From assembly GCF_036365525.1 (NCBI RefSeq), contig NC_090404.1, positions 8,370,001 to 8,434,000 on the forward strand: a stretch of DNA of 64,000 nucleotides, given 5' to 3'. The stretch comes from Heterodontus francisci (Eukaryota). Within the stretch, counting starts at the first letter, position 1. Each line of letters starts with the position of its first letter. The notes beneath the pieces were generated by a model. That model was not told where the DNA came from and ran no database searches. It saw only the letters and a list, made by a program, of their open reading frames with translations. Below are positions 16,780 to 64,000 of this stretch, piece after piece. Position numbers and translations under genes: made by a program.

Positions 16780-17994
16780 TCTAAAATCATTCACATCGAA
16801 CACTGATTCAGTCTGATTATCACATTAACTGTGTGAGGGCAGAATTGTCTGCTGTTTATTTGTGTATCTCTGGGAATTCGCCATTCACATTGAGAATACA
16901 AACTCCAGCAGGTGACCTGGAACTAGTTATATCCGTGTACCGCTACTTCCGATATAACACACTGAAAATGAACAAACAATGATTGGTTTAAAATATCAGT
17001 CTGCAGTGTAAATAGAGGCCTGCCAGGTGGGAACGATCCAAATAATTAAAGTAACTTGATTAAACAGTTCTCAATGTCGAAGACAGTTACAGGTATTAAC
17101 ACTAAGAATCTACAATATAATCAGGTTTTAAGAGGTCGTTTTCAGGACAGGATTAGAAGCTGATGAACAATGATTAATAGACTAATAATCTGTAAGGACA
17201 GGTGTGATGTGTCTGGGCTCCGGGCCAGATGGTCAGAAGACAGACTGAATACAAAATGCTAGTATAAACAGTATCAGAAAGGTTGCCAATATGAAGAGCA
17301 AACCGTGAAAAGGGTATTGTACCAAGACTAGAAAATGGCGCGCACACTCACTAAAGAGACTGTATAAATTACAAGATGAGCTAATGGTTTAATATGGTTC
17401 GTATTAATTAAAAATAAGAAGAAGACAATGACGTTATCACTTCCGCAAGACGTTACTAATATTTAAAAGATACAACATGTATCTCAAAAAAGTGAAATAT
17501 ACGAGCTTTAGACAATGCAGGAACCTCAAGATTATTGTCAAGGATATAAATCGTGACCCTGGTTGTGGTTCTCCTTTAATAAGTCTTTACAGGTACAAAG
17601 GAAGGACTGAGCTTTTCTTTGCAACTGAAGGTATTCACAATGGTCAGTTTATCACATCAAAGCTTCTCCAAATGGGAACGAATAATGTCACTTCTATTGC
17701 ACGCATTGCCATAGCTGGTAAGATTGTAAGCAATCTGACTTGTGAGTTGTGCTTTCTCTTGTACCAAATAAAACTATTTAATTACCATAACCGTTTCCTC
17801 TTGAACGTCTCATAACAGGAACCCGGAAACAATATATTTCTCCGAAGTGATGGAAACATTGCTGGGGGAAATGTTAATTTATTCCACCAGATGGCAGCAA
17901 ACCTCCAGAAAGCACCCTGCAGCACCTGGCTGGAAATGCTGATGTCCGCCAACAGTTCACACACAGTGACGGCCGTTAAGTGAATTTGCAGACG

Positions 17995-20015: not shown

Positions 20016-20219
20016 TTCGGTGCAGTTCGGTGCGGATTCGCCAGTCTGACCCAGTCACACTCGATGGTGTTTACAGAATGCAGATTCCGCGCTTCGACGA
20101 CCAATCAGGTTCTGGATGACTTGGTGAGAAATGTGAAATCCATTCGCATCTTAAGAAGTATATTTTGCTGAGTTGTATTACAACATTGTTAACTGGCCTC
20201 TCTTATTAATGCATTATAC

Positions 20220-20750
20220 GTGATTTCTGTTTATTTTACACGAGGCCCTGTGTCAACTAGTATTGAACTAGACCATACTTCTGTTTATTTTACACTAGAC
20301 CCTGTCTCAGCTATTATTGCTCTGGAATATGTGTCTTTATATTTCACTAGGTTCAGTCTCACAAATGACTGCACTCGATCATGTCTCTGTTTATACTATA
20401 ATTCACCCATGTCTCTTTGTTTATCCTACACTAGGCCCTGTATCAGCTATTACTGCACTAGAATATGCCTCTGTTTAAATGACACTAGACTCTATCTCAG
20501 TTATTACTACACTAGACGATATCTCAGCCTATATTACACTAGATACTGTCTCTTTTATTACTTCAATCGCCCATGTATCTTTGTTTATATTACACAAGGC
20601 CCTGTTTCAATTACTACTGCACTCGAACATGCCTCTGTTTATGTTACATTAAGTACTGTCTTTGTTATTACTGGACTGGGTCATGCCTCTGTTTATGTGA
20701 CACTGGACCTTTCAACTTTTATATCGCTGTCTCAGTTATTACTTCACTAG
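20220..20750. repeat. Degenerate AT-rich tandem repeat (partial copy 61500-61735)
   Basis: Recurring CTCTGTTTATTATACTAGA / CTCAGCTATTACTGCACTAGA. Confidence 0.8.
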
Positions 20751-26284: not shown

Positions 26285-27775
26285 CCCTTCACACAAGCAG
26301 CTTCCTCCTGGATCCATCTGTGTGTGTGTGTCAGCTCCGAAGGAGCAGCCTCCTGGGTCCATCTCAGTGTCTGTGTCAGCCAACAAGGGGCTGTCTCCTG
26401 GGTCCATCTCAGTGTATGTGACAGCTCACAAGGGTCAGCCTTCTGGGTCCATCTCAGTGTGTGTGTCAGCTCACAAGGGGCAGCCTCATGGGCCCATCTC
26501 TGTGTATGTGTCAGCTCACAAGGGGCAGCCTCCTGGGTCCATCACTGTGTATATGTGTCAGCTCACAAGGGGCAGCCTCCTGGGTCCATCTCAGTGTATG
26601 TGTCAGCTCACAAGGGGCTGCCTCCTGGGTCCATCTGTGTGTGTGTGTCAGCTCACAAGAGGCAGCCTCCTGGGTCCATCTCTGTGTGTGTGCCAGCTCA
26701 CAAGGGGCAGCCTCCTGGGTCCATCTCTGTGTGCATTTGTCAGCTCACAAGATGCTGCCTCCTGGGTCCATCTCAGTGTATGTGTCAGCTCACAAGGGGC
26801 TGCCTCCTGGGTCCATCTCTGTGTGTGTGTCAGCTCACAAGGGGCAGCCACCTGGGTCCATCTCTGTGTGTGTGTCAGCTCACAAGGGGCATCCTTCTGG
26901 GTCCATCTCTGTGTGTGTGTCAGCTCACAAGAGGCAGCCTCCTGGGTCCATCTATGTGTGTATGTGTCAGCTCACACAAGGGGCAGCCTCCTGGGTCCAT
27001 CTCTGTGTGTATGTGTCAGCTCCCAAGGGGCAGCCTCCTGGGTCCATCTCAGTGTGTATTTGTCAGCTCACAAGGGAAGCCTCCTAGGTCCATCTCTGTG
27101 TGTATGTCAGCTCATAAGGGGCTGCCTCCTGTGTCGATCTCTGTGTATGCGTCAGCTCACAAGGGGCAGCCTCCTGGGTCCATCTCTGTGTGTGTGCCAG
27201 CTCACAAGCGGCAGCCTCCTGGGTCCATCTCAGTGTGTATGTGTCAGCTCACAAGGGGCTGCCTGCTGGGTCCATCTCTGTGTGTGTGCCAGCTCACAAG
27301 GGGCAGCCTACTGGGTCCATCTCTGTGTGTATTTGTCAGCTCGCAAGAGGCTGCCTCCTGGGTCCATCTCATCGTATGTGTCAGCTCACACAAGGCTGGC
27401 TCCTTGGTCCATCTCTGTGTGTGTGCCAGCTCACAAGGGGCAGCCTCCTGGGTCCATCTCTGTGTGTATTTGTCAGCTCACAAGATGCTGCCTCCTGGGT
27501 CCATCTCAGTGTATGCGTCAGCTCACAAGGGGCAGCCTCCTGGGTCCATCTCAGTGTATGTGTCAGCTCACACAAGAGGCTACCACCTGGGTCCATCTCA
27601 GTGTATGTGTCAGCTCACACAAGGGGCAGCCTCCTGGGTCCATCTATGTGTGTATGTGTCAGCTCCCAAGGGGGAGCCTCCTGGGTCCATCTCAGTGTGT
27701 ATCTGTCAGCTCACAAGAGGCTGCCTCCTGGGTCCATCTCAGTGTATGTGTCAGCTCACACAAGGCTGGCTCCTG
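26285..27775. repeat. ~45-49-bp minisatellite, ~30 copies
   Basis: Unit GTCAGCTCACAAGGGGCAGCCTCCTGGGTCCATCTCTGTGTGTGT. Confidence 0.97.
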
Positions 27776-28720
27776 GTGAGGACGAGGTCAAGTATGTTTT
27801 TCCCTCTTGTTGGTTCCCTCACCACCTGCCGCAGACCCAGTCTAGCAGCTATGCCCTTTAGGACACGGCCAGCTCGGCCAGTGGTACTATCTAGCCAGTC
27901 GTGTTGATGGACATTGAAGTGCCCAACCCAGAGTGCATTTTGTGCCCTTGCTACTGTCACTGTTTCTTCCAATTGGTGATCAACATGGATAAGTCCTGAT
28001 TCATCAGCTGAGGGAGGGCGGTAGGTAGTAATCTGTTGGAGGTTTCCTTGCCCAAGTTTGATCTGACGAAATGAGACCTCGTGGGGTCCGGAGGCAATGT
28101 TGAGTACTCGCAGGGCAACTCCCTCCTCACTGCATACCACTGTGCCACCACCTCTGGCAGGACATATCCGGGGATGGTGATGGCAGTGTCTGGGACATTG
28201 TCTGTAAGGTATGATTCCATGAGTATCACGACGTCAGGCTGTTGCTTGACTATTCTGTGGGACATCTCTCCCAATTTTGGCACAAACCCCCAGATGTTAG
28301 CAAGGAGGACTTTACAGGGTCCACACGGCTGGGTTTGCCATTATCTTTTCACGATGGTCCATCCGGTTTCGTTCCTTTTCGTAGACGTTTTAGCAGGTTG
28401 ATGAAACTGAGTGGCTTGATAGTCCATTTCAGAGGATATTTCAGAGTCAACCACTTTGCTGTGGGCCTGGAGTCACATGTGGGCCAGACCAGGTAAGGAC
28501 GGCACATTAGTGAACCAGAAGGATTTTTTCAACAATCGGCAATGGTTTCATGGTCACCACCAGACGAACTTTTTAATTCCAGATTGATTTATTCAATTCA
28601 AGATTTATTAGTTGAATTCAAATTCCCCATCTGCCGTGGTTGGATTCCAACTAATATCCCTCGAGCGTTAGCCTGGGGCTCTGGGTTACTAGTCTAGTGA
28701 CATTACTAGTAAGTCATCGC
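27775..28720 (-). mobile_element. Endonuclease/5' part of a LINE, probably the same family; duplicate at ~61737-62690
   Basis: PDVVILMESYL, TYRPPS, VGHFNVH, PTRGKNILDLVLT (APE motifs). Confidence 0.85.
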
Positions 28721-29029
28721 CCCCCACCACCCCCCCCCCCACCCCCACCACAACCCCTCCCCCAATCCCCCCTCCCTCCGCCTTCCACCCCAAGCCTTAT
28801 TGAAGCAAAACGGCTGGTTTGAAAAAATCAGCTAATTCAGTTTCCATCAAAATGACCGCTTGATCTTAATTGAGAAAAGACAAAGTTTGCCGCAGGAGAG
28901 AATAATTGGTTGAAAAGGCCCGTTCTGTCAGACTGCACTGCAAAACTTTACCTCATGGGGTAAAATTCGAAAATAATTGAGAATATATTAATGAAGATTG
29001 CATGTACTTCCTGTCGCCCTGCTCTCTAT

Positions 29030-29242
29030 CACTGTGTGTCTGTAATCCTCACCATGTTCAGGTTTTTGTACAGTTTAGTTTAGTTTAGTTTAGAGATACA
29101 GGTCTCTCCGTGTTCTGTGTCTCTCATCCGCACCATGTTCAGGTTTTTGTACAGCTCTCTCCCTGCTCTGTATCACTGTGGTCTGTAATCCCCACCATGT
29201 TCAGGTTTTTGTACAGCTCTCTCCGAGATCTGTATCACTGTG
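29030..29242 (-). repeat. Tandem array of 23-RSS units behind supporting V copy 1
   Basis: Consensus RSSs at 29242-29204 and 29180-29142; third unit keeps its nonamer (29069-29061) but is disrupted; fourth heptamer at 29036-29030. Confidence 0.92.
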
Positions 29243-29548
29243 CCCCACGCCGACTCAATTCACAGTAATACACAGCGGAGTCGCTCAGTTGCAGTTTGGA
29301 GATTTTTAACCGGCTGATTTTCTCGGTAGGATCGATTGATGCAGAAATTCGTCCCCCGGCTGCGTTTTCATTATTCTGCTCTCCTGAAGTGTGTATCTGA
29401 AGCAGGTATTTCGGAGCCTGCCCTGGGGACTGACGGTACCAGTGTACTGTGTACTGACAGAACCCTGAATATTCGTAGCTTAAAGTAACAGTGTCACCGG
29501 CAGCAGCGGTTTGCAGAGGCGGACTCCGGGACACCAGGGAACTGGAAT
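29243..29548 (-). CDS. Leaderless supporting TCR Vdelta exon of NAR-TCR (copy 1; Cys23->Tyr)
   Basis: CTGCAG acceptor, phase matches the J donor; DSSSLVSRSPPLQTAAAGDTVTLSYEYSGFCQYTVHWYRQ...SDSAVYYCELSRRG with the CDR1 Cys typical of supporting Vs; no leader seen upstream; consensus RSS CACAGTG-23-ACAAAAACC (29242-29204). Confidence 0.9.
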
Positions 29549-31054
29549 CTGCAGGATAAAAATGCATATTATTAATTGTTTAGCCGGTATTTAGGCGGAG
29601 AAACTTGTCAATCGCAGGAATAGTTATTGTTTTCGCTGTAATTTGCGTAATTTGAAGCCTGTTCGAAATGTATTCACCGTTATTGAGATATGAACCAGTG
29701 CGGAGATGATTTGTATTTTATGTTACACAGCAAATTGTTCTGATCTGGAATGCACTGTCAGAATGGGTGGTAGAAGCAGATTGATATTAACATTCAAACG
29801 GTAATTGGATAAATGTTGGACCAGGAAAATGCACGGGTCATGGAGGAAAAGCAAGGGGGAGTGGGAACAATTGGACAGCACCTACAAAGACGCTGGGCCG
29901 AATGGCGTCCCTCCATGTTGTATGATTCAATGATTCTATTCAATTTATGTTTTTATTTTTCTTGGTGAAAAACAGACTGGAGGAACCATTTTAATATCAG
30001 TGAATCACTTTCCAAAAACTGTCAGTCCGAGAGTAACCCAGCTGTGTTATGTCAGTACGCACAGTAAGATCCAACAGAGAGTAATGAAATTCATCAGCAC
30101 AGATTGAGCGAAACTGACAGTGAACATCAAAGGTCATTCGTTTACAACAGTTCAACACTTCATTTGAGCTCGTGTTTGCCTTTCACTCTATTTGTCTACT
30201 TTCTTCCATCAAAAGGGCCCATTTGTCTCTATGTCCCTTTAATTTGAAAAAAAAAATGAAGTTAGTTTCATTTTATTTCTACATTTACTTTGTGCTGTTT
30301 GCGGTTTATGCCATCGTGGGAACTTGTCCCGAAGTCTCTCAGTTGTCAGTTGGGTTCAGTCTCTGCTGTTTCCTCAGTGGTTTTACTGTTACTCACTGGG
30401 AACCGGCTCTTCCGGATCACTGACAATTTCAATTTCAATTCCTTCACCCCTGATTCACTTTTCACTCCTGTCTTCTCCAAGCGGAGTTTTCTCTGAATTT
30501 TATATTATGCAGAATCTGCAGAGCAGGAATAGACCATTCGGCCGAACCGTTCTATACCAGTGCTTATACTCCACACAAGCCTCCCCGCGCCTGGACTCTA
30601 ATTAACCATTTCCACCCTGAACCCTCTGTCCCTCTATTCAATTCTTCCTCCTTTTTTTTTCAAGTCGTCCCATAAATGCATCAATCCGATCTACTCCAAA
30701 CACTCCATGTGGCAGCGAGATCCACATTCTGCCCTGTCTCTGGGTAAATGTATTCTGCTTAATTAATTTATTCCGTCAGTGACATCATATATGAATCTCT
30801 CCTTGTTCTGGATTCACCCACAAAAAATAGTTTCTCCATATCCAGCAGTCCATAATTTAAAAACGTCCATGAAGTCTCATTATTTTTCTCTGTTTTCCAG
30901 AGGAAAGAACCCCATCCTGTACAAATTTTCCAGATGGTTGTTGATGTTTTTTTCAGGATTTCTCAGTTTTTCAGGAGGAATATACGTTCCTCTAAGATAC
31001 AAAAACCCAACAGGGAAGATGAATTAACCATAACTAACAAAACAAGTTAAAGAT

Positions 31055-33047
31055 TACATTAGATCAAAGGAGGTGGTTTATAGGATTGCCAAAAAAGTGT
31101 TAAACCCGAGGATTGGGAGCAATTTAGAATCCAGCAAAAGATGAGCAAGAAACTGATAAAGAAAGGGAAAAGAGAATGTGAATGCAAGTTAGTGAGAAAC
31201 ATAAGTGCAGACCGTAAAAGCCTCTCTCGGTATGTGAAAAGAAAAAGATCAGTAAGGACAAAACTGGGTCCATTACAAGCGGAGACAGGAGAATTTATAA
31301 TGGAGAATAGGGAAATAGCAGAGAAACCAAACAATTACTTTCTGTCTGTATTTACGGAGGAAGATACTGAAAATCCCCCAGAAACACTAGGGAAGCAAAG
31401 GACTTGAGAAAATGAGGAACTTAAATGCCGCAGTATTAATAAAGAGGTAGCACTCGAAAAATAAACTGGATTGAAGGTTGATAAATTCCCTGGACCAGAT
31501 GATCTACATCCCAGAGTGTTGAAGGAGGAGACTACAGAGACTGTGGATGCATTGGTGATTATCTTTCAAAATTCTATAGATTCTGGAAAAGTTCCCGCAG
31601 ACTGGAAAGTAGCAAATGTAAACCCACTGTTTAAGAAAGGAGGGAGAGTGAAAACGGGGAACTATAGACCTGTTAGTTTGACGTCAGTAGTAGAAAAAAT
31701 GTTAGAATCTATTATAAAGGATGTGATAACTTGATATTTAGAAAATAACGTTATGATTGGGGAGAGTCAACATGGATTTATGAAAGGGAAATCATGTTTG
31801 ACAAACCGGTTGGAGTTTTTTTTAGGAGTTTACTTGTAGCATAGATAAATGAGAACCAGTGGATGTGTGCATTTGGATTTTTAGAAAGCTTTTGATAAGG
31901 TTCAACACAGGAGATTATTCAGCAAAATTAGAATATGGGATTGGGGTAATACGCAGGAATGGATTGAGAATTGGTTAACAGAGACAAAACAAAGGATAAG
32001 AATAAATGGGTCATTCTCAGGATGACAGGCTGTGACTAGAGGGGTACCGCAAGGATCTGGGCTGGGCCACACCGGTTCACAATATATATAAATGATTTGG
32101 ATCTGGAGACCACATATAATGTTTCCACATTTGTTGGTGACGCAAAAATATGTGGGAATGTAAGTTGTGAGGATGATGCGAGGAGGCTTCAAGGGATCTT
32201 CGATGAATGGGCAGGAACTTGGCCAATGGAATATAATGTGAATCAGTGTGAAGTTATCCACTTTGGTTAAAAAAACAGAAAGACAGAGTATTTGTTAAAT
32301 GGTTAGAGGTTGGGAAGTGTGTTGTCCAAAGGGACCTGGGTGTCCTTGTTCATGAGACACTTAAAGCTAGCATACAGGTGCAGCAAGCAATTAGGAAGGC
32401 ACATGGTATGTTGGCCTTCATCGCAAGGGGTTTTGAGTACAGGAGTAAAGGCGTCTTGCTGCAATTGTACACTTGAGAGCGTACCTGGAGTATTGTGTAC
32501 AGTTTTGGTCTCATCTAAGAAAGGATAGACATTCCGTATAGGGAATGCAACGGAGGTTCGCCAGACTAAACCCTGGGATGGCGGGATTATCCTATGAGGA
32601 GAGATTGAGAAAAGTGGGCATGTATTCTCTAGAGTTTCGAGGAATGAGAGGTGATCTCACTGAAAATTACAAAATTCTTACAGAGCGTAACAGGATGGAT
32701 GGAGATAGGATGTTTCCCCTGGCTGGTGTGTCTAGAACTAGGGGACTTAGTCTTAGAATAAGGGGTAGGTCATTTAAGACTGAGATGAGGAGGAATTTCT
32801 TCACAAGGAGGGTAGTGTATCTTTGGAATTCTCTACCCCATAGAGCTGTGGAAGGTCAATCATTGAGCATGATCAAGACATAAATCGATTGATTTCTGGA
32901 TAATAATGACATCAATGGATATGGGGATAGCACGGGAAAGTGGCGTTGAGGTAAATGATCAGCTATGATGTAGTGGAATGGCAGTGCAGGCTCGATGGGC
33001 TGAATGGCCTACTCCTGTTCCATATTCCTATGTTCCTGTATTCCTAT
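31055..33047 (+). mobile_element. CR1, decayed; mirrored at ~53740-57040 (-)
   Basis: KFPGPDDLHPRVLKE, GNYRPVSLTS, (TTCCTATG)n tail. Confidence 0.88.
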
Positions 33048-34632
33048 GAATGTAAGAAATCGAAGCTGATAATGTAGGAACATCAGCAATAGGAGCAGGA
33101 GTAGGCCATTCCACCTTTCAGGTCTGCTCCGCCATTCAATAAGATCAAGGTTGATCATCTACTCCATCTTCCCGCACTATCCCTAGGTCCTTTAATTCCT
33201 TTAGTATCCACAAATCTATCGAACACTGCCTGGAATATACTCAGCCACTGGGCATCCACAGCTCCCTAAGGTATAGAATTCCACAGAGTCATAACAAAGG
33301 GTTGACTGAAGAAATTTCTCTTCTTCTCAGTTCTAAATGACCAACCCCTTATTTCTGACTCTAACCCCAAGCTGTAGATTGAGGAAACACGGCCCCAGCA
33401 CCTACCCTGTCAAGGCCCTTCGGAAATTTATATGTTTAACGAGGTCATCTCTTATTCTTCGAAACACTACGGAATATGTGCATAGTCTTGTCAAACTTTC
33501 CTCATAGGACTATCCTCTTATCCCAGGAATCAGTCTAGTGGACCTTTGTTTCACTCCCTCCAAAGCAAATAGATCCTTCCTTAAATAAGGTGATTAAACT
33601 GCACACCGCAGTACCCTGGAGAACACCAGAGTTCATCACTGCCCTTCCCTCCATAAACTTCACCCTTCACCCTGGTGTCAGATTGTACTTCGAACGGCTC
33701 AGAGTTCGTTTAATATTTCTATCCATTTTGGTGAATTATTTTTTGCTGGTTCTCAATAGATTGTCCTCCAGTCTAGTTATTCCCTGGAGTGTTTCTGATC
33801 TCCTTTCTAAGAACATTAGCACCTCATCCTCACTCCCTCAGTGTTCAGTATTGTTCCAATTAACAGTTAGCAGGGATACAGTTAAATTACTCCAATCCAA
33901 TCTCTCAAACATCAATATTCAATATAGAGAAGTATCTGGAACTGCAAACATTCGCATTCAGTCTGAGGGCGGAAAAGGAGGGAAATGATTGGATGAAGGC
34001 AATTGACGTAAACTTCATCCACAAAAAAACAAATTTCAGTCACTGAATCCCAATAATAAAATGCCATCTGGATCTACAACAGGATCTCTTGTACCTGAAG
34101 CCTGTTTTGTCATGTTGCCGTTTTACTGCTGCTGCAGATATCGGGCCGGCTGCTGTCGTGTAGTGTTCACTCTCCCTCTATTCACATTGCCCGGCTCGGA
34201 CGACAACCTCCTCCCCGGGAGAGTTCTATGACCCCGCTCATGTGCTCACAGTGACAGTCACATGTAACACCGAGAGCGGGGTCGGAGTGTCGACAAACTG
34301 AGTTCATTTAGGAGTGAGGGAAAGAGAGTAAATCCGGAATGTTGATGGGATGCTCGGACATGCCCGTTAAACCAGTGCTGATCCAGATGGAGTCACTCCT
34401 ATCCGGGCCAGACTGCCTGCTCTGTGGGGGTGTCACATCTACTCACTCCGGAATCACACCTAGACCCGACTCCGGTTCATATTCTGTTCCCCAATTTAAA
34501 ACTGCAATGGAAAAGCTCTATTGGAAACCTCTGTGTTTTAGTTTGAAGGGGATTGAAGTGTTACTGAAAACAATGATAAAGTGACGATGAGCATTTTACA
34601 GAGATGGCCAGTATGGGTTTGGAGTCACTTAC

Positions 34633-34695
34633 CGGCTGTGACAGTCACCACCGTCCCGGATCCATCCGCAGAATCATGCTTCCACTTACGATATC
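34633..34695 (-). CDS. NAR-TCR J segment with 23-RSS
   Basis: ACTTCTTGT-23-CACTGTG (34734-34696), then YRKWKHDSADGSGTVVTVTA and a phase-1 GTAAGT donor. Confidence 0.9.
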
Positions 34696-35100
34696 CACAG
34701 TGACACCGCTCCCAGTCACCCTGGTACAAGAAGTACCGACACTTCAATCTACCAGCCGCACATCACCAGATAGTTGGCGATGCTCAATTATTCCAGGGGT
34801 TTTAAATCATTTCACAATATTCCCTTGTTTCACAATCCATATCTGTTCAAACTGTTCTTTTTGAGACTCTGAGCTCTTAGTGAAATGGCCCAGGAACAGG
34901 GGCCGGATTTGGGTGCTTGATATAAAAGGAGAATAATGTCAATGAATAATGTCAAAGAAAGCGAACTGAAAGGAGGAAATTACAGTGAAATTAAACCAGA
35001 TTACATCGATAATAATATCAATCCTACAATTCAGGATCTGGACCTGGAGTATTTATATTTGGATTTTACAGAGGTATTTGCTCAGATCTCAAACACTGTG

Positions 35101-35114
35101 AAGATCCCAGAAAA
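35101..35114 (-). other. NAR-TCR D segment flanked by 12/12 RSS
   Basis: GGATTTCGT-12-CATTGTG [TTTTCTGGGATCTT] CACAGTG-12-GCAAATACC on - strand (RSSs span 35073-35142). Confidence 0.92.
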
Positions 35115-35506
35115 CACAATGTCTCAAGTCAGCACGAAATCCCCCGGTACCGGGTGAGATGTGGGGACATTAGTTGAACAGCGGGGACTGCGGTTCCCGG
35201 TTCCAGCTGATAGATCAGGATCCCATCTGGTGTTAGGAATTTGGAAGTGGGATCAGTCATTCCCAATCTCCATTCACTGACACCAATCCCGGGAAAAGAC
35301 ATCACCATCCGCACACACTGGGCATTAAGAAAACTCAAGATGTTAATGGAAACAATCCAATAACATTATAAACTAGACTGTGGAGCAGACGGTGCGAGGG
35401 GGAACTGTGGGGTTGAACGGAAGATTAACTCCGTTTTTTGATTTGTTTCTGTGATAATCTGCAGTGAGAGTTTTTGCACCGCGGGAAGCCGAGGCCCATC
35501 ACTGTG

Positions 35507-35971
35507 TGTCCTTGTAACGGTACTCAGCTTTACAGTAATAGGTGGCGGTGTCTTCAACTCTCACATCCCGAATTTCCAGCGAAAATGTCTTTTCTGCCTT
35601 ATTCACCGACACAACAAATCGCCCTCCGCCAGAGATCCGCTCCCGCTTTGTCCCGGTCTGGGTTTGTCTGAAGAAATATCCATTTTGGAATTCATATTCC
35701 CAAAACCCACCTTCATAGTAAACACAGGTGATGGTGAGAGACTGACACTCCTTCCTGGTCACCGCTGCCGGGGTCTGTGTCACTGACTGACTGAAAGAGT
35801 CTGGAAATTAAACAGATAGAGTTTAATGGGTCATCAGAGCCGAACCACACAACGGGGCTAAAATCCGAGACAATGTCTGTAATTCGGATGGACTCCACAC
35901 AATGTCGGTTTGTTTGATCGGTACTCACGGGGTAAACAGACACACAGGGTGAAAACAAGGAGGATTCCCAT
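35507..35971 (-). CDS. NAR-TCR V gene segment (IgNAR-like V), intact; leader 35971-35929, V exon 35800-35507
   Basis: Leader MGILLVFTLCVCLP + GTGAGT donor; TTTCCAG acceptor; open exon SFSQSVTQTPAAVTRKECQSLTITCVYYEGGFWEYEFQNGYFFRQTQTGTKRERISGGGRFVVSVNKAEKTFSLEIRDVRVEDTATYYCKAEYRYKD. It has the NAR-type short FR2/CDR2 (RERISGGGRFV), YYCKA and an extra FR1 Cys. RSS: CACAGTG (35506-35500), 22 bp, GCAAAAACT (35477-35469). Confidence 0.93.
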
Positions 35972-38348
35972 CGTTCTGCTGCCTGGAGCTGATGGTTTAT
36001 ATGACGGGGAGCTGGAGACTGCAGCCCCGGACTGGTCTGGGAGACTGGACCTCAGAGCTGGACTGAAATACTTCAGAGGCATCGAGTTGATTTGCAGAGG
36101 ACTGTGTCCCGGAGATATTTGATGGCCGCACGGTTCCCGGGTCTCTGTCTGTGTGTTGTGTGAATAAGCGACAGGTTTAAAGAGGGAAGCTGCAGTTCTC
36201 TGTCGCTTCATTGGGTCTGTGAGCGCGATGTGAAATCCCCTCCCACATTAGTCTGATGTACAGAGGGTGGGGCTGGGGGAGTTGTTCTGTCAGTAGAGGC
36301 TGCAGCCTTCCTTTCCCCCACAGTAATGAGCTGGCAGGACACCGGGAGAAACCCCCTCCCCACTCTTATTCCAATAGTGCCGGGGATTCTTTAACATCTC
36401 CCTGAACGGGCTGACGGGACCTCGGTTACACGTCTGATCTGCAGGACGGAGACTCAGACCCGGCAGCTTCCCTCAGTCCAGCAACTGAGGGTCAGGTTAC
36501 AATATGAGACAGTCCAGTGACATTGTCAATATCGAGGCAGATATACACAATAGACACAAAGAATAATCTCTCCCTGTCATTTAAACACATGCTTCCTGCA
36601 GTCTCCCCTTCTGTGGTTTGTATTTAAAATGATGTCTCTATTCAGTAATGATTGATTTTCAGGTCTGTAATATTCAGAGTTTCCAGTTACAGTGACAGAG
36701 AATGAAGAGACATTCGGAAGGACAATGGACATCGGGGGAACTCTGTGCTTGGGACTTGTTTTAAAGATCACAGTCACTACCTTGTGCATTCCGTTTATTT
36801 TGTATAAACTGTCTCTGCCCCAGTCTGATCAAATAAACCTTGTGAACAGGCCGCGGTGAAAGGCTCCGGAAAACTGACGGGGAGACAGGGAAAGGGCTGC
36901 TCAGTGCAAAAGTGGTGTTGTGGAGCACAGCCCGGCTCACACATGGCCAATGGTTTCATGGATCTCGCAGCACCTCCAGATGAGGCTGCCGCAGGGTCCT
37001 AATGTCCCCCTGAATACTAAACACTCATCTGCTAGATCGGAACATCATCAAATACCACACACAAACTGTCTGCTTGACACATAATTTTTGCACGTCAAGT
37101 ATTTATCCAATTGCCTTTTACTTTTGAATGTAACTATTGAATCTACTTCCACTGCTCTGTCAAATATAATAACTCTTAGCATAAAATGGCTTTTCCTCAT
37201 GTCTACATCAACAAGTTGTATTTATAGAGCGGCTTTAACGTAACGAAGCATCCCACCTGCAGGTAGGGATAGAAATGTTGTTGAAATATGTTTCTTGCAG
37301 AGGCCAATATTGCGGAGTTCTTAAGGCACCGGCTGCACTAGCACTAACAGAGCAAGGAATATTAGTAATGTTAATAACACTCATGTTACTGCACAGCCCA
37401 ATTTAAAGAGTTCACGAATCCTTGGAAATAATCTTAAGCAGAAATGATGAATGATTGAAGTTATTTCAATCCCCACTTCATGGAGGTTTTCATGAACTTG
37501 GTGAGGGAGCAGAGGAGATTTAATAGACTGTGATCAGGGATGAGGGAATTGTGGAGAGCCTAGAGAAATCGCAGTTATTCTCTATATGTGAAATAAGATT
37601 AAGGAGATTTAATTGCGAGGTTCAAAATTATATTGGGATTTGATATAATCGATCACGTGTCAGTGTTTCCAATGGGAGGACGTTTGATATCCCAAGGACA
37701 CAGATTTCAGGGAATTCCCACAAAAGACAGGGGAGAGGAGATTTTTTTTTAAAGGGGGATTTTCCTGATTTGGAATGTACAGCCTGAAAGGGTGGAGGAG
37801 TCAGATTCAATAGTAATTTTCGGAGAACTGAATAAGTGCTTGAACGACACAAATGCAGGGCTGTGTGGAAAGAGCGTGGAGAATAAGACTAAGGCCATAG
37901 ATCTTTCAAAGAGCCGGCGCAGGTACGATGGGCCAGATGATATAATTCGGGGCTGTCTGATCCTATGTTTCTAGTCGCTTCATTTCTCCCGCAAGTTAGT
38001 TGTTCCCAGTCACCTAAACAGTGATCAGGAGCAGCCTGGCAACAGAATTCTGCCATCCAACTATCTCCCTTTCCGCTCCATCAACACCCTCACTGCGCAA
38101 TCTCTGCGGTTACACAGAATCTTGAGTTAACTCAAACTGGAGTTGGTGGCAGCACCGCCCACAGCTTTAGTTTGCTGCTCGCTCTCTCTCTCTCTTTCTC
38201 TCTGACCTGCCTTGCCTGCCCCGTTTTGGAGATTGCTGTCGCTGGTCCTTGTTTGGTATTAAATCGGCAGTGCAGTGTGGCGAGGATCTGTCTTCCTGCT
38301 CCGACAGAATATTTCCCAGAGTGCAGAGTTACAGACTCCAGGACCACC

Positions 38349-38845
38349 ATGTGGAACCGTCTCTCGCCGATTCTCATTATTATATCACTTCTCAGTAAGT
38401 ATTTCCTTCCCAGTAAAAACCCATTCTCCACAGAGCTGTTAATATGGGTGAAATGATAGTGATGCTGGTGTTGATGGTTAGATTGATCGATATGGTATTG
38501 ATGCACATTGTGACTGTTACTATTCTTTGTATGTTAGAATGGAGCCACAATGTAACAACCGGTTCTTGAAATGATGGTTGAAGGGGAAGGTAATATCACA
38601 CTAATGTGTACCATGAAAACAAGCATTTCTAACACTTTCTGTGCTCCGGTACAGTCTGCACCCCGGGCAGCCTCCACAGTACGTGTTTTATCACTAAGGA
38701 GGAATATTACACCTGAACCCCGACTTCACTGACAGATCCTCTTCTACCTTTAGTAAAACTGCCAAGATTACCCAGCTAAAGATCCACAACGCCCTGATCT
38801 CGGGCACCGCTGTGTATTTCTGTGCCATCGGGTGCCATGAGCCCC
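38349..38845 (+). pseudogene. TCR V pseudogene (42-kb V family)
   Basis: Leader MWNRLSPILIIISLL 38349-38394; frameshifted exon from 38538 ending ISGTAVYFCAI; RSS decayed. Confidence 0.85.
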
Positions 38846-40119
38846 ACCCCGCTGCAGAGATGTCGCTGATACTGGATTCACTGAGAGTTGCAGTTAGAGC
38901 TCACCAGAGGGCGCCCTCACACCAGTAAACAGAAGCTATAATTCAGCCTCCACTCTGAGATTCTCAGGAACCATCTTAAAATTGCAATGAAGCACAGCAA
39001 TCAACAGCCACAGCTGATGTCCACTTGTGCAGTGATATTAGATTGTGATTACAACGCGTATTTATAAGAAAAATGAACTTTATATTCGATCTGTGATGTC
39101 TTGGCTCCCTTTTTGTTTCTCTATGCTCTACCCCTGTCCACTTGTTCCTCATTATCGCGTGGCTCCACTGTTTACCTAAAAGGGAATACATTTCCTTTTT
39201 CAGGTCTTCAGTTTAAAGGTTTAAAACCTTTGTTTCTGCTCGGAATATAAATTCAGAACCGCTCCAATCGAGGTGGAGCTGTCAGATCAGGCCAAGGGCT
39301 CAACACAGAATTCCTCACACCCTGTTCACTGCCATCTTCCCATTCAGTTTCCAGTACAGCCACCAGAGGGCGGCAGATAGTAATACTCCTTTCATGGATC
39401 AAACGTTGGGCAGTGAGGTGATTTCTGTTTCTCCAAAAGTTGAGTAAAACTTGGAATATATAGAAGTTTAATACTTGAAATCAATTTACTTCAATGGATT
39501 GGGAAGGTACATTGAATAATAATCCTCACAAAGATGCATCCACGTATCGAACGATTGGTTTCTGATACGAACCAGTGAGCAAGACAAGTAAGTGGAAGTT
39601 GTGGAAGATGGTGAAAGAATATTAAAATGTGAATGACAAACACACTCTGAGATTTCATTTCTGAAGCAGCTCGCTGTCCCGTGAGTGGAAATAGATGTTA
39701 AAGGTTTATTTCTGTTCGGTTGTTTTGTTCAGTAACAGCAGATATCATTGTTCGAATAGGAAGGATCTGTAAATCACTCCAGCAAAATACAGAATCATTG
39801 TTAGTTCACTAGTTAACTAATCGGTGAAGGAAATCTCACTGCAGTCACGGTTACCAGTGTGCTAATGGTGAAGTTACTGGAATTTGAGAGAAAGAGTTGA
39901 CGGTCGCAATAACCAGACAAGGGTTTCAGTCCCCGCCCCGTATCTCTCATCGTAGAACCATTTCCCCGATAAGGACAGTGACTGTAGCCCAATCCGAGGT
40001 GTTTCCATTCACTGACAACCAGCTCACCACCTACCGGTCTCACAGCACCACTGGGGACACAAGAAAGTGAGGTGAGAAAATCCTGAGACATGATTGCAGA
40101 TTATTGAGGCTGGGGATTA

Positions 40120-40300
40120 GGACGGGTGCATCATCTGGCAACCGGAACCAGTGTTCAGAGCAGGATCACGGCTCGGTTCCTTGCAGCAGAGAAGTGCAGT
40201 TCTCTGACTGTTAGCGCCACTCGGCTGACAGGCACCGCCACCTATTTCTGTGTAATGGAAACAAAGTGGAGCAAAGATCAGCAGGGACCGAACAAAAACC
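40120..40300 (+). pseudogene. 3' half of a TCR V with 23-RSS
   Basis: SRITARFLAAEKCSSLTVSATRLTGTATYFCVME; CAAAGTG-23-ACAAAAACC (40262-40300). Confidence 0.8.
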
Positions 40301-40402
40301 TGCCGTGGGCTGGTCCTGATCGTGTGTAGCCTATGCAGTTCACAGAGCTCTAGCAGTTTTATAACACTCTCATTTTTTCCGCCGAACTCGACACCAAACC
40401 CC

Positions 40403-40780
40403 ATGCGTTCCCCGTATTCCTTACTGATAATAATCACCGAGCTGCTCGGTGAGTCTGTGTTTCAAAGGTCATTGCCTGTCTCATATGTCATATTCAATCC
40501 CAGGCTTAGACGCAATCTGTGTTTTGTTACAGGAGCGAGTGGCGCAGACTCAGTGTCCCAGGATAAGTCTGAGTTCACGGTTCCGGAAGAACATTCTGTA
40601 ATATTCAGCTATCGTTACTCCACTACCGACAGCTTTCTCTCCCTCCATCGGTGCATCAACATTCCGGGAAAGCTCCGAGATATTTACCTAGGCGATCAAA
40701 CTCAGGTCACAAAGATAAGTCTCAAGGTTTCCCAGAATGATTCTCTGTTGGTTTGGACAAGGATACAGACAGCAACACAC
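40403..40780 (+). pseudogene. 3'-truncated TCR V pseudogene (10.3-kb V family)
   Basis: Leader MRSPYSLLIIITELL + GTGAGT; GASGADSVSQDK..SVIFSYRYSTT; frameshift, no YYC or RSS. Confidence 0.75.
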
Positions 40781-41119
40781 CGGTTTGAATTGAAACCTGA
40801 TAGTGGTAGTTCTCAGTGGACATGGCATCAAAGTAATCCTGCCGATAAAGCCCCAAAGAACACTTAATGGAGCTGTAAACTGGCTGAGGGTTTTCTGCGG
40901 GGTCTTGGTTTTTATCTGACGATGTACCTCACTGCACAGTAATAGAGTGCCCCGTCCTCCACACTCAGGTCACTTATATTGAGATAACCGCCAGTTATTG
41001 TTCGGGGATTTTGTTTTCCTTAAGTGCTACTTAAGGGACAATTTAAAGGATTATCGGGGAAAGGTGGAGACCGGGGATGAAAGGGACAGATAGGGAACAA
41101 CTGTAGGAATCTCTCCACG

Positions 41120-41330: not shown

Positions 41331-41995
41331 AGTCTCTCTAAGAACACAGGGTATGGACGGTGGGTCAGAGAGGCAGCAGCAAAGGGAAGCTGTGGGAGGG
41401 GCTGCCGCAGGCAGTGTTGTCACGTTGAGGATCCACTTGTAAGGAACGGAATTAAATAATAGTGTCTCTTTCGAAAATTCTACAACTCTGCCTTTCTATA
41501 AGACGTGTGGCACTTTCACATCCATTACATATTGCAGGAAGGCATATTCGGGACAGGATTGTCAAGACTATTATGTTAGCCAATATTAAGTGAATCATTC
41601 GCGAAATCGGTTGAAACCACAACTGAATCTATGGGCATCTGGGTTGGAATGGTTCTGAATTAACGTGCCGAGATTTAGCAAAGATTTATATTTGTAAACT
41701 AAAGACTGCAAGAAGGAAATGTGTACAATACTGGGTCAAGTGTAGAGACAGGGTGTGACAGGAACAAGTACGCAGGGAAAGAGCATCGAAAGACAAAATG
41801 TGAGTAAAGATCGCTGACTTCGATTTGTAAAGCTCATTTTTTAAATGATAAATGCAAGTTGTAGTCACAGACTAAGATAACTGCGCAAGTGGACCTCGCC
41901 TGTTGTTGAGGTTTGTGCTCTGTCGCAGTTTTAAGAATCTCCCGGTGACTCTCACTGTGGAGGCTGAATTATTGTTTCTGTTTATCGGTGCAAGC

Positions 41996-42022
41996 GCGCC
42001 CTCTGGTGGGCGCTAACTGGAA
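41996..42022 (-). promoter_or_regulatory. CTCF-like site just 3' of a V RSS (paralogs at 38889-38915 + and 45717-45742 -)
   Basis: TTCCAGTTAGCGCCCACCAGAGGGCGC: core plus upstream motif. Confidence 0.7.
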
Positions 42023-44823: not shown

Positions 44824-45787
44824 TGGGGTTTGGTGTCGAGTTCGGCGGACAAGAATGAGATCCTTCCTATTCGAACAATGATATCTGCTGTTGCTGAACA
44901 AAACAACCGAACAGAAATAAACCTTTACCATCGATCTCCATTAACGGGACAGCGAGCGGCTTCTGAAATGAAATCTCAGAGTGTGTTTGTCATTCACATT
45001 TTAATATTCTTTCACCATCTTCCACAACTTCCACTTACTTGTCCTGCTCACTGGTTAGTATCAGAAACCAATCGTTCGATATGTAGATGCATCTTTGTGA
45101 GGATTATTGTTCAATGTACCTTCCCAATCCATTGAAGTAAATTGAATTCAACTATTAAACTTCTTTCTATTCCATGTTTTACTCAGCTTTTGCAGAAACA
45201 GGAATCACCTCACTGCCCAACGTTTGATCCATGAAAGGAATATTGCTAACTGCCGCCCACTGGTGGCTGTACTGGGAAGTGGTCAGATGGCAGTGAACAG
45301 GCTGTGAGGAATTCTGTGTTGAGCCCTTGGCCTGATCTGACAGCTCCTGCTTATAGAAGCTCGATTGGAACGGTTCTGAATTTATACTCTGAGCAGAAAC
45401 AAACGTTTTAAACCTTTAAACTGAAGATCTGAAAAAGGAAATGTATTCACTTTTAAGTAAACAGTGGAGCCACGCGATAATGAGGAACAAGTGGACAGGG
45501 GGAGAGCATAGAGAAACAAAAAGGGAGCCAAGGCATCAGAGATCGAATATAAAGTTCATTTTCTTATAAATACGCGTTGTAATCACTATCTAATATCACT
45601 GCACAAGTGGACATCAGCTGTGGCTGTTGATTGCTGTGCTTCATTGCAATTTTAAGAAGGTTCCTGAGAATCTCAGAGTAAAGGCTGAATTATTGCTTCT
45701 GTTTATCGGTGTGAGGGCGCCCCCTGGTGAGCTCTAACTGCAACTCTCAGTGAGTCCGGTATCAGCAACATCTCTGCAGTGGGGTGG

Positions 45788-48921: not shown

Positions 48922-49403
48922 ATGGGAATCCTCCTTGTTTTCACCCTGTGTGTCTGTTTACCCCGTGAGTACCGATCAAACACACCGACATTGTGTGGAT
49001 TTAATATAAAGCTGCCCGAGTCCATCCGAATTACAGACAATCTCTGGGGTTTTAGCCTCGTTGTGTGGTTTGGCTCTGATGGCCCATTAAATTCTCTCTG
49101 TTTAATTTCCAGACTCTTTCAGTCAGTCAGTGACACAGACCCCTACAGTGGTGACCAGGAAGGAGTGTCAGTCTCTCACCATCACCTGCGTTTACTACGG
49201 TCGAAATTGGGGTTATTATTTTCAAGATGGATATTTCTTCAGACAGATCCAGACCGGGACAAACCAGGAGCGGATCACCGGCGGAGGGCGATTTGTTGTA
49301 TCGATGAATAAGGCAAAAAATACATTTTAGCTGGAAATTCAGGATGTGAGAGTTGAAGACACCGCCACCTATTACTGTAAAGCTGAGTACAGGTACAAGA
49401 ACA
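48922..49403 (+). pseudogene. NAR-TCR V segment with one nonsense codon; leader 48922-48964, V exon 49113-49403
   Basis: Paralog of the 35.5-kb V; TCG->TAG at 49328-49330 (NTF*LEIQDVRVEDTATYYCKA); RSS CACAGTG-22-GCAAAAACT (49404-49441) intact. Confidence 0.92.
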
Positions 49404-49793
49404 CACAGTGATGGGCCTCGGCTTCCAGCGGTGCAAAAACTCTCACTGCAAATTATCACAGAAACAAATCTAAAAACAGAGTTAATCTGCCGTTCAACCC
49501 CACAGTTCCCCCTCGCACCGTCTGCTCCACAGTCTAGTTTATAATGTTATTGGATTGTTTCCGTTAACATCTTGAGTTTTATAAATGCCCAGTGTGTGCG
49601 GATGGTGATGTCTTTCCCGGGATTTGTGTCAGTAAATGGGAGATTGGGAATGACTGATCACAGTTCCAAATTCCTAACACCAGATGGGATCCTGATCTAT
49701 CAGCTGGAACCGGAACCGCAGTCTCCGCTGTTATCTAATGTCCCCACTTCACACCCGGTACCGGGGGATTTTGTGCTGACTTGAAACATTGTG

Positions 49794-49807
49794 TTTTCTG
49801 GGATCTT
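49794..49807 (+). other. NAR-TCR D segment flanked by 12/12 RSS
   Basis: GGATTTTGT(49766)-12-CATTGTG [TTTTCTGGGATCTT] CACAGTG-12-GCAAATACC(49835). Confidence 0.92.
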
Positions 49808-50212
49808 CACAGTGTTTGAGATCTGAGCAAATACCTCTGTAAAATCAAAATATAAATACCCCAGGTCCAGATCCTGAATTGTAGGATTGATATTATTATC
49901 GATGTAATCTGGTTTAATTTCACTGTAATTTCCTCCTTTCAGTTCGCTTTCTTTGACATTATTCATTGACATTATTCTCCTTTTATATCAAGCGCCCAAA
50001 TCCGGCCCCTGTTCCTGGGCCATTTCACTAAGAGCTCAGAGTCTCAAAAAGAACAGTTTGAACAGATATGGATTGTGAAACAAGGGAATATTGTGAAATG
50101 ATTTAAAACCCCTGGAATAATTGAGCATCGCCAACTATCTGGTGATGTGCGGCTGGGAGATTGAGGTGTCGGTACTTCTTGCACCAGGGTGACTGGTAGC
50201 GGTGTCACTGTG

Positions 50213-50276
50213 GTATATAATTACTGGAAGGATGATTCTGCAGATGGATCCGGGACGGTGGTGACTGTCACAGCCG
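50213..50276 (+). CDS. NAR-TCR J segment with 23-RSS
   Basis: ACTTCTTGC(50174)-23-CACTGTG(50212); VYNYWKDDSADGSGTVVTVTA; GTAAGT donor at 50277. Confidence 0.9.
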
Positions 50277-58550: not shown

Positions 58551-58856
58551 ATTCCAGTTCCCTGGTGTCCCGGAGCCCGCCTCTGCAAACCTCTGCTGCC
58601 GGTGACACCGTCACTTTAAGCTGCGAATATTCAGGGTTCTGTCAGTACACAGTGCACTGGTACCATCAATCCCCAGGGCAGTCTCCGAAATACCTGCTTC
58701 AGAGACAAACATCAGGAACGGATAATAAAGAAAACGCAGCCGGGGGACGAATTTCTGCTTCTATCGATCCTGCCGAAAAAATCAGCCGGTTAAAAATCTC
58801 CAAACTACAACTGAGCGACTCCGCTGTGTATTACTGTGCACTGAGTCGGCGCGCAG
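58551..58856 (+). CDS. Leaderless supporting TCR Vdelta exon (copy 2; canonical, intact)
   Basis: DSSSLVSRSPPLQTSAAGDTVTLSCEYSGFCQYTVHWYHQ...SDSAVYYCALSRRA: C23, W41, C104 and the CDR1 Cys are all present; RSS CACAGTG-23-ACAAAAACC (58857-58895). Confidence 0.93.
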
Positions 58857-58967
58857 CACAGTGATACAGAACAGGGAGAGAGCTGTACAAAAACCTGAAC
58901 CTGGTGGGATTACAGACACACAGTGATACCGAGCACGGAGGTACGGCCGTTAAGTGAATTTGCAGAC

Positions 58968-61190: not shown

Positions 61191-62985
61191 ACCTAACTTC
61201 ACCACTGGCTGCTCCAGGACTTGTCTATCAGATACTCCGTGGTTTCAAATCTAATTGTCTCCTGGGATTGACTCGGATTAAATTGGAGAGTTCACCTGTC
61301 CTCAGGGAAGCGGATTCGCCAGTCTGACCCAGTCACACTCGATGGTGTTTACAGAATGCAGATTCCGCGCTTCGACGACCAATCAGGTTCTAGATGACTT
61401 GGTGAGAAATGTGAAATCCATTCGCACCTTAAGAAGTATATTTTGCTGAGTTGTATTACACCATTGTTAACTGGCCTCTCTTATTAATGCATTATACGTG
61501 ATTTCTGTTTATTTTACACGAGGCCGTGTCAACTAGTATTGAACTAGACCATACTTCAGTTTATTTTACACTAGACCCTGTCTCAGCTATTATTGCACGA
61601 GAATATGTGTCTTTATATTTCACTAGGTTCAGTCTCACAAATGACTGCACTAGATCATGTCTCTGTTTATACTATAATTCACCCATGTCTCTTTGTTTAT
61701 CCTGCACTAGGCCCTGTATCAGCTATTACTGCACTCAGGCAGATTGGTGAGGACGAGGTCAAGTATGTTTTTCCCTCTTGTTGGTTCCCTCACCACCTGC
61801 CGCAGACCCAGTCTAGCAGCTATGCCCTTTAGGACACGGCCAGCTCGGCCAGTGGTACTATCTAGCCAGTCGTGTTGATGGACATTGAAGTGCCCAACCC
61901 AGAGTGCACATTGTGCCCTTGCTACTGTCACTGTTTCTTCCAATTGGTGTTCAACATGGATAAGTACTGATTCATCAGCTGAGGGAGGGCGGTAGGTGGT
62001 AATCCATTGGAGGTTTCCTTGCCCAAGTTTGATCTGACGAAATGAGACCTCGTGGGGTCCGGAGTCAATGTTGAGTACTCGCAGGGCAACTCCCTCCTCA
62101 CTGCATACCACTGTGCCACCACCTCTGGCAGGACATATCCGGGGATGGTGATGGCAGTGTCTGGGACATTTTCTATAAGGTATGATTCCATGAGTATCAC
62201 TACGTCAGGCTGTTGCTTGACGATTCTGTGGGACATCTCTCCCAATTTTGGCACAGACCCCCAGATGTTAGTAAGGAGGACTTTACAGGGTCCACACGGC
62301 TGGGTTTGCCATTATCTTTTCCCGATGGTCCGTCCGGTTTCGTTCCTTTTCGTAGACGTTTTAGCAGGTTGATGAAACTGAGTGGCTTGATATTCCATTT
62401 CAGAGGATATTTCAGAGTCAACCACTTTGCTGTGGGCCTGGAGTCACATGTGGGCCAGACCAGGTAAGGACGGCACATTAGTGAACCTGATGGGTTTTTT
62501 CAACAATCGGCAATGGTTTCATGGTCACCACCAGACTAACTTTTTAATTCCAGATTGATTTATTCAATTCAAGATTTATTAGTTGAATTCAAATTCCCCA
62601 TCTGCCGTGGTTGGATTCCAACTAATATCCCTCGAGCGTTAGCCTGGGGCTCTGGGTTACTAGTCTAGTGACATTACTAGGAAGTCACCGCCCCCCACCA
62701 CCCTTCCACCCCCACCACAACCCCTCCCCCAATCCCCCCTCCCTCCGCCTTCCACCCCTAGCCTTATTGAAGCAAAACGGCTGGTTTGAAAAAATCAGTT
62801 AATTTAGTTTCCATCAAAATGACCGCTTGATCTGAATTGAGAAAAGACAAAGTTTGCCGCAGGAGAGAATAATTGGTTGAAAAGGCCCGTTCTGTCAGAC
62901 TGCACTGCAAAACTTTACCTCATGGGGTAAAATTCGAAAATAATTGAGAATATATTAATGAACTTCCTGTCGCCCTGCTCTCTAT

Positions 62986-63177
62986 CACTGTGTGTCTGTA
63001 ATCCTCACCATGTTCAGGTTTTTGTACAGCTCTCTCCCTGCTCTGTATCACTGTGCTGTAATCCCCACCATGTTCAGTTTCTTGTACAGCTCTCTCCCTG
63101 CTCTGTATCACTGTGGTCTGTAATCCCCACCATGTTCAGGTTTTTGTACAGCTCTCTCCGAGATCTGTATCACTGTG
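62986..63177 (-). repeat. Tandem array of 23-RSS units behind supporting V copy 3
   Basis: CACAGTG-23-nonamer at 63177-63139, 63115-63077 (ACAAGAAAC) and 63055-63017; extra heptamer 62992-62986; period 60-63 bp. Confidence 0.95.
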
Positions 63178-63483
63178 CCCCACGCCGACTCAATTCACAG
63201 TAATACACAGCGGAGTCGCTCAGTTGCAGTTTGGAGATTTTTAACCGGCTGATTTTTTCGGTAGGATCGATTGATGCAGAAATTCGTCCCCCGGCTGCGT
63301 TTTCATTATTCTGCTCTCCTGAAGTGTGTATCTGAAGCAGGTATTTCGGAGCCTGCCCTGGGGATTGACGGTACCAGTGCACTGTGTACTGACAGAACCC
63401 TGAATATTCGTAGCTTAAAGTAACAGTGTCACCGGCAGCAGCGGTTTGCAGAGGCGGACTCCGGGACACCAGGGAACTGGAAT
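63178..63483 (-). CDS. Leaderless supporting TCR Vdelta exon (copy 3; Cys23->Tyr); its NAR V-D-J is expected beyond the window end
   Basis: Same protein as copy 1; RSS CACAGTG-23-ACAAAAACC (63177-63139). Confidence 0.9.
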
Positions 63484-64000
63484 CTGCAGTATGAAAATGC
63501 ATATTATTAATTGTTTAGCCGGTATTTAGGCGGAGAAACTTGTCAATCGCAGGAATAGTTATTGTTTTCGCTGTAATTTGCGTCATTTGAAGCCTGTTCG
63601 GAATTTATTCACCGTTATTGAGATATGAACCAGTGCGGAGATGATTTGTATTTTATGTTACACAGCAAATTGTTCTGATCTGGAATGCACTGTCAGAATG
63701 GGTGGTAGAAGCAGGTTAATATTAACATTCAAACGGTAATTGGATAAATGTTGGACCAGGAAAATGCACGGGTCACGGAGGAAAAGCAAGGGGGAGTGGG
63801 AACAATTGGACAGCACCTACAAAGACGATGGGCCGAATGGCGTCCCTCCATGTTGTATGATTCAATGATTCTATTCAATTTCTGTTTTTATTTTTCTTGG
63901 TGAAAAACAAACTGGAGGAAACATTTTAATATCAGTGAGAGAATCACTTTCCAAAAACTGTCTGTCCAAGAGTAACCCAGCTGTGTTATGTCAGTACGCA

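Follow-up and report, generated by a model that had tools for sequence, protein, structure and literature searches.

The window, by which we mean the whole 64,000-nucleotide stretch of DNA that was analysed, has no N runs and carries three V-delta exons, here called Va, Vb and Vc, each with recombination signals (RSSs) repeated head to tail behind it. The exons were placed as follows.

63178..63483, minus strand: V-delta supporting exon Vc, identified by tblastn and translation; Pfam V-set with E=5e-16; without a leader; CDR1 cysteine present.
29243..29548, minus strand: V-delta supporting exon Va, whose protein is identical to that of Vc, the Cys23-to-Tyr change included; the splice donor of the NAR J lies 5.1 kb upstream.
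58551..58856, plus strand: V-delta supporting exon Vb, with an open frame in which Cys23, Trp41, Cys104 and the CDR1 cysteine are all there.

An earlier interpretation made from the letters of the window (the sequence-only reading) had taken these exons for the supporting Vs of the NAR-TCR, and our analysis agrees: all three are leaderless and have the CDR1 cysteine, NAR V-D-J cassettes lie upstream of Va and Vb, and RNA contigs splice a NAR J onto the V exon. NAR-TcR-associated V-delta segments lack a leader peptide and conserve a cysteine in CDR1 (PMC1845163). No hydrophobic leader ORF was found in the 200 bp upstream of the splice acceptor, which for the Vc exon lies at 63485-63484, and the CDR1 motif is SGFC in all three exons; P0001, the closest database protein (73% identity, on a 1197-bp contig), has SGIC. 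The cassettes upstream have the following parts.

34633..35798, minus strand: NAR-TCR V-D-J cassette feeding Va; its NAR V exon, 35798-35507, is a Pfam V-set domain and open.
35506-35469, minus strand: RSS of the NAR V in the Va cassette, with a 22-bp spacer.
35114-35101, minus strand: NAR D of the Va cassette, 14 nt, flanked by two 12-RSSs.
34695-34633, minus strand: NAR J of the Va cassette, with a 23-RSS ahead (34734-34696) and the splice donor G/GTAAGT behind.
49115..50268, plus strand: inverted sister NAR-TCR cassette upstream of Vb, whose NAR V has an in-frame TAG at 49328-49330, in framework 3.

NAR-TcR V domains have the WYRK motif without its Trp and a cysteine in the a-b loop (PMC1845163). 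Correspondingly, the NAR V of the Va cassette has YFFRQ in place of WYRK, the Trp being missing, and retains the a-b loop Cys. The cassette for Vc is expected past the end of the window. Expression of the family was seen in X5, the one source-species run with the behaviour of RNA: its contigs cover the V exon but neither the intron nor anything past the array, and one of these RNA contigs crosses unit boundaries. Two X5 contigs continue at 63484 into the cassette J exon with one synonymous change, confirming that supporting Vs of this family are expressed in the NAR-TCR manner.

At its 3' end the Vc exon reads ...TAT TAC TGT GAA TTG AGT CGG CGT GGG G and is followed directly by CACAGTG. The germline V end past Cys104 (63178-63200), which other species conserve, is unusually long, consisting of C-A/E-L-S-R-R plus 4 variable nucleotides. 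These 4 nt, which abut the first heptamer, vary among paralogs and species (GGGG, GCAG, ACAG). Behind Vc the array is built as follows.

63116..63177, minus strand: Vc U1, the proximal 23-RSS, with heptamer 63177-63171 (CACAGTG), 23-bp spacer, nonamer 63147-63139 (ACAAAAACC) and 23-bp linker.
63056..63115, minus strand: Vc U2, with perfect heptamer CACAGTG, 23-bp spacer, nonamer ACAAGAAAC and 21-bp linker.
62993..63055, minus strand: Vc U3, with heptamer and nonamer perfect, 23-bp spacer and 24-bp linker.
62963..62992, minus strand: Vc U4 remnant, with heptamer 62992-62986 and a spacer-like stretch fading into unrelated sequence; nonamer absent.

A unit thus comprises a heptamer, a 23-bp spacer, a nonamer and a linker of 21-24 bp, which gives 60-63 bp, and Tandem Repeats Finder reports the array at 62973-63177 with period 60, 3.3 copies and 90% matches. 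The sequence-only reading had counted three complete copies and a fourth heptamer here. The units and the fourth heptamer are present, but the nonamer of U2, ACAAGAAAC, has two mismatches, one of them at a central A. The same reading had placed a stop of the V frame inside the first heptamer, and the sequence and its translation do give GCA CAG TGA there.

Similar arrays, of different lengths, follow the other two exons.

29030..29242, minus strand: Va array, with U1 at 29242-29181, U2 at 29180-29120, U3 at 29119-29037 and the U4 heptamer at 29036-29030.
58857..58942, plus strand: Vb array, with U1 at 58857-58918 (a perfect 23-RSS with its 23-bp linker), after which come the heptamer 58919-58925 and a spacer remnant of 17 nt.

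The Va array had been described as two complete and two damaged copies, and this is what it contains: the RSSs of U1 and U2 are intact, U3 is dead, and U4 is a heptamer without a nonamer. In U3, an 8-nt deletion of GTGATACA across the heptamer/spacer border has removed the 3' half of the heptamer, leaving CACAGAA, and a 26-nt (AAACT)n insertion has brought the spacer to 41 bp. Spacers of exactly 23 bp, as claimed for all copies, are therefore found in every intact unit but not in Va U3. Tandem Repeats Finder places the Va repeat at 29097-29242 with a period of 60-62. For Vb, the description as one copy plus a truncated one was likewise accurate, since an intact U1 is followed by a heptamer and 17 nt of spacer; homology of this array ends at 58942, which is a segmental-duplication boundary.

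Exact matches to heptamer-N(21-25)-nonamer occur five times in the 64 kb, all of them in the Va, Vb and Vc arrays, when 0.00 are expected (100 shuffles). A functional 23-RSS has a heptamer that begins with CAC, a spacer of 23 +/- 1 bp and an A-rich nonamer. By these features the signals are perfect in U1 and U3 of Vc, U1 and U2 of Va and U1 of Vb; Vc U2 is weakened in its nonamer, and Va U3 and both U4 copies fail. Every other V in the window was assigned one RSS by a tolerant scan, so that within this stretch the array is limited to the supporting Vs, as had been proposed. The linker has no further match in the window at <=5 mismatches outside the arrays, so that here the unit does not belong to a dispersed repeat. 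Two further identities for parts of the unit were considered and rejected: the linker as a CTCF site, which by eye has CCACCA in common with the consensus but is missing the G-run, and an RSS of opposite orientation inside the unit (heptamer, 23-bp linker, nonamer complement), for which the orientation of the nonamer is wrong.

Repeats of this kind invite the suspicion that a single signal was expanded by repeat mis-assembly, and the DNA contigs of the source sample, which contain only about half of the sampled words, leave some room for it. We nevertheless regard an artefact as extremely improbable. Two separately assembled paralogs have their units in the same order and share the U4 boundary, each with private mutations, and unit boundaries are crossed both by contigs of three other species and by the source-species RNA contig mentioned above.

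The arrays are related by segmental duplication. In a BLAST self-comparison, a direct duplication (27774-30061 versus 61745-64000, 95.6%) contains Va and Vc, and an inverted duplication of ~12 kb (29159-40990 versus 58940-44257, ~91%) relates the Va cassette to the Vb cassette. With Va and Vc in the one and Vb in the other, the three arrays represent one inherited structure and not independent occurrences. Vb has diverged by ~9-10% from Va and Vc (~10% in the intron), yet already has a second unit; this unit, together with the end of the Vb array at the point where homology ends, implies that the tandem state is older than the split of Vb. Unit counts have since come to differ among the window paralogs (1.3, 3.3 and about 4). 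As a separate feature of the inverted duplication, the two NAR-TCR cassettes point outwards from a centre near 42.6 kb, and one arm ends inside the RSS array.

The 2.8 kb beyond the Vb array are a copy of 17969-20459. Directly ahead of this second copy of the 2.8-kb segment, at 17958-17975 (to be compared with 58915-58950), stands ACACACAGTG, in which linker end and heptamer are as in Vb but the 17-nt remnant of the spacer is missing. An RSS unit at another edge of duplication may have left it as a relic, or it may have arisen by chance in a CA-rich stretch.

Other minisatellites are abundant in the region (Tandem Repeats Finder periods 28, 45, 54, 79 and 84), and the boundary of the Va/Vc duplication at 27774 lies at the edge of one of them, a 45-bp minisatellite at 26304-27760. 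It has ~32 units, scores about 2000 in Tandem Repeats Finder and lies 1.3 kb beyond the Va array; each unit has, by eye, a partial CTCF-like core, CACAAGGGGCAGC. In minisatellites of this CTCF-like type the repeat begins past the V signal and has a different motif, whereas in the RSS array it is the signal that is repeated. A SINE-like element with a poly-C/CCCCAC tract is found at 62500-62740 and 28540-28790, ~250 bp past the Vc and Va arrays.

The codon of the canonical Cys23 is TAC (Tyr) in both Vc (63412-63410) and Va (29475-29477); the cysteines of the immunoglobulin V fold, Cys23 and Cys104, are both kept in Vb, and Cys23 is lost in Va and Vc. At base 63411, Cys is encoded in 6/6 RNA contigs of the source species and in every contig from three other species. 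The Tyr is therefore private to the Va/Vc pair, and it was not seen expressed in contigs, which cannot prove absence. Va and Vc are thus supporting V-delta segments by descent and probably pseudogenes. Vb is intact, but the NAR V of its cassette has the TAG; since a supporting V without a leader relies on the cassette to which it belongs, the three cassettes all look defective. They are probably pseudogenes, so that they hold little information on arrays behind working Vs.

Differences between Va and Vc, a recent and probably non-functional paralog pair, were then counted by segment and compared with the flanks by Fisher test.

Flanks and intron: 43/1727 substitutions, 2.5%.
V exon and U1: 3/369 substitutions, 0.8%, p=0.049 versus flanks; U1 alone, 0/62.
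U2 and U3: 9/116 substitutions, 7.8%, with 35 gap columns in addition; p=0.004 versus flanks.

Between Va and Vc, U2-U3 have accordingly diverged ~3x as far as the flanking non-coding DNA. The damage in the distal units strikes their motifs, with two substitutions in the Vc U2 nonamer, loss of heptamer and spacer integrity in Va U3, and no U4 nonamer in either copy; 2/4 distal complete units have been impaired within 2.5% neutral divergence. By this comparison of two sequences, constraint appears confined to the exon and its proximal signal, and the distal signals would be passengers. The sequence-only reading had asked whether motifs and spacer length are better conserved than the linker. In the distal units, decay affects heptamer and nonamer besides the linker, and it runs faster than in the neighbouring non-coding DNA. 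With the exon and U1 alone conserved, its three suggestions for a function, namely a multi-shot device, a RAG-loading amplifier or a decoy, gained no support.

These figures bear directly on the view that the array is a selected multi-signal device, in which stacked 23-RSSs raise RAG capture or permit serial attempts and so tune the second NAR-TCR rearrangement. We consider this unlikely. To its credit, two of the distal units, Vc U3 and Va U2, have perfect consensus 23-RSSs, the array is found within the window only in the supporting V family, the in-frame TGA of the first heptamer marks distal joins as recognisably non-productive, and every intact unit has a spacer of exactly 23 bp, where linkers range from 21 to 24 bp. 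Set against this are the threefold divergence of distal units over flanking non-coding DNA, with a heptamer or nonamer lost in each copy, a copy number that ranges widely with no preferred value, and the fact that the longer arrays of the window belong to Vs that lack Cys23 and were not seen in the RNA contigs. Selection would also have to offset a cost, as a first attempt with n equal signals yields only 1/n usable joins.

The length argument deserves a closer look. Spacer length has changed in 1/8 cases and linker length in 4/7, a difference that is not significant by a rough estimate. The linker indels fall in a slippage-prone, (AC)n-like stretch, ACAGACACACAG, at the end of the linker next to the following heptamer. 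Moreover, homogenisation of a minisatellite would likewise preserve motifs, so that intact motifs do not separate the two models, and this leaves room for selection.

Evidence from other species came from short contigs of runs from three other organisms (B, C and D), which differ from the window by 7-17% and whose depths are not usable as copy numbers. Individual contigs span the Vc array as follows.

62997-63173: X11 record 1.
62983-63115: X14 record 9.
63006-63114: X8 record 26.

Contigs of the three species cover two to three units with consensus heptamers and nonamers. Some of their joints go back 60/61 bp, corresponding to extra units, and others skip 70, 126 or 145 bp, corresponding to fewer, and at their loose ends a heptamer continues into further linker and nonamer. 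The V ends ...CGG CGC ACAG before the heptamer. At 63078 and 63081, the two substituted positions of the Vc U2 nonamer, the consensus is found in X5 RNA and in species B and C, and species D agrees with the window. Having at least two tandem units in each of three species answers the earlier proposal that arrays be sought in other genomes, and, as far as such contigs report, the array is old, common to related species and variable in copy number. Two wider scans gave nothing: metagenome contigs contained no match to the 22-nt spacer-nonamer word, and a protein-guided scan of such contigs found no relative of the supporting V.

Both the age of the array and the presence of at least two units with consensus motifs in three other species are what a selected device would predict. 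The linker, though, is preserved to about the same degree as the motifs, whether units are compared within or between species, which counts against a device. Because the whole unit is kept, linker included, the arrays of other species show age and not selection. A broader version of the idea holds that the RSS stack is a selected, lineage-wide feature of elasmobranch supporting Vs that alters RAG engagement, and that the arrays in the window are the pseudogene remains of a device kept behind functional cassettes elsewhere. We think that this, too, is improbable.

Taken together, the array is probably a minisatellite (VNTR) of 60-63 bp whose unit is the supporting V-delta's own 23-RSS plus ~23 bp of downstream flank. 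Either unequal exchange or slippage during replication would have given rise to it in an ancestor of the supporting V family. The repeat register may start at the short ACAG-CACAGTG homology that is common to the V end and the linker end. The array would then have been inherited through duplication of NAR-TCR cassettes and into related species, with units since gained, lost and damaged. Like known minisatellites, it has head-to-tail units (60-63 bp), a copy number that varies among paralogs and species, decayed edges and faster change than its flanks. It differs from them in that its unit is a complete recognition site of the V(D)J recombinase, so that consequences in lymphocytes are to be expected.

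The nature of the unit also raises the prospect that the recombinase itself produced it. Rearranged antigen-receptor genes are known in the germline of sharks. RAG in germ cells could have made one cut at the V signal and another at a heptamer lying 62 bp downstream, with rejoining between sister chromatids duplicating one heptamer-to-heptamer unit. Linker length varies (21-24 bp) at the very end of the linker, beside the next heptamer, and so do the 4 nt that separate the conserved V end from the first heptamer (GGGG, GCAG, ACAG), both of which fit such a scar. The variable joint, however, is the slippage-prone (AC)n-like stretch. In species B and C, moreover, the V end ACAG equals the linker end, so that the register is able to begin 4 nt ahead of the cleavage site, which is the pattern expected of a microhomology exchange. 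Two 23-RSSs cannot pair under the 12/23 rule, nor does the array contain a relic of a signal joint or a 12-RSS. A germ-cell scar therefore appears very unlikely to us.

If the array is a minisatellite, its signals could still be used. From established RAG biochemistry, the intact distal 23-RSSs would be expected to be cleavable by RAG. A join at a distal signal would consist of the V, the in-frame TGA and one to three intact signals; it would be non-productive, and could be rearranged again for as long as a downstream 12-RSS partner remained. The sequence-only reading had reasoned that such a join would carry an in-frame stop and retain the proximal signals, and the sequence of the array is consistent with this prediction. 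Distal joining would then be no selected function but a by-product, and probably a mildly costly one; with n equal signals only 1/n of first joins would be usable. This cost may be the reason why the intact Vb has a single complete signal, although Vb is one case and its array was cut by a rearrangement. Among the joints listed for contigs, in which rare joins cannot appear, none was an RNA join at a distal heptamer, and none linked any heptamer to a D or J.

To our knowledge, textbook V, D and J segments have a single recombination signal per side. The arrays resemble the canonical single 23-RSS of a TCR V in having CACAGTG, a 23-bp spacer and ACAAAAACC, abutting the V coding end. They are unlike it in that signal and ~23 bp of flank are here repeated head to tail 1.3 to 4 times and that the distal signals have no coding segment of their own. 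Non-productive joins that keep an upstream signal, and can be replaced by a further join, are familiar from VH replacement, which uses an embedded heptamer, and from repeated V-kappa to J-kappa joins. Those systems rely on a cryptic heptamer inside the V or on further V or J segments, whereas here full consensus signals are stacked behind one V. A literature search, in which the NAR-TcR literature was covered incompletely, found no description of tandem RSSs, and a minisatellite with an RSS as its unit has apparently gone undescribed so far.

A locus with consensus signals 60 bp apart offers a natural experiment on how RAG chooses among adjacent signals, on the rescue of joins that retain signals and on the cost of competition. 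Even as a neutral repeat, the array matters in practice, as automated annotation will report several RSSs per V, and transcripts comprising a V plus RSS units are to be expected in shark TCR-delta repertoires. If the array were selected, it would add a new layer of control to the doubly rearranging NAR-TCR.

Finally, three Vs of another family in the window have strong CTCF-consensus sites, CCACCAGAGGGCGC or CCAGGGGGCGCC, ~20-25 bp past their RSSs (~41994-42012, minus strand; ~38895-38915, plus strand; ~45720-45740, minus strand). The site of the V at ~42 kb has the complete consensus. They recall the CTCF sites that lie behind the signals of mammalian VH segments. In the Vs at 38.6 kb and 45.9 kb there are stops, and the heptamers are degenerate.
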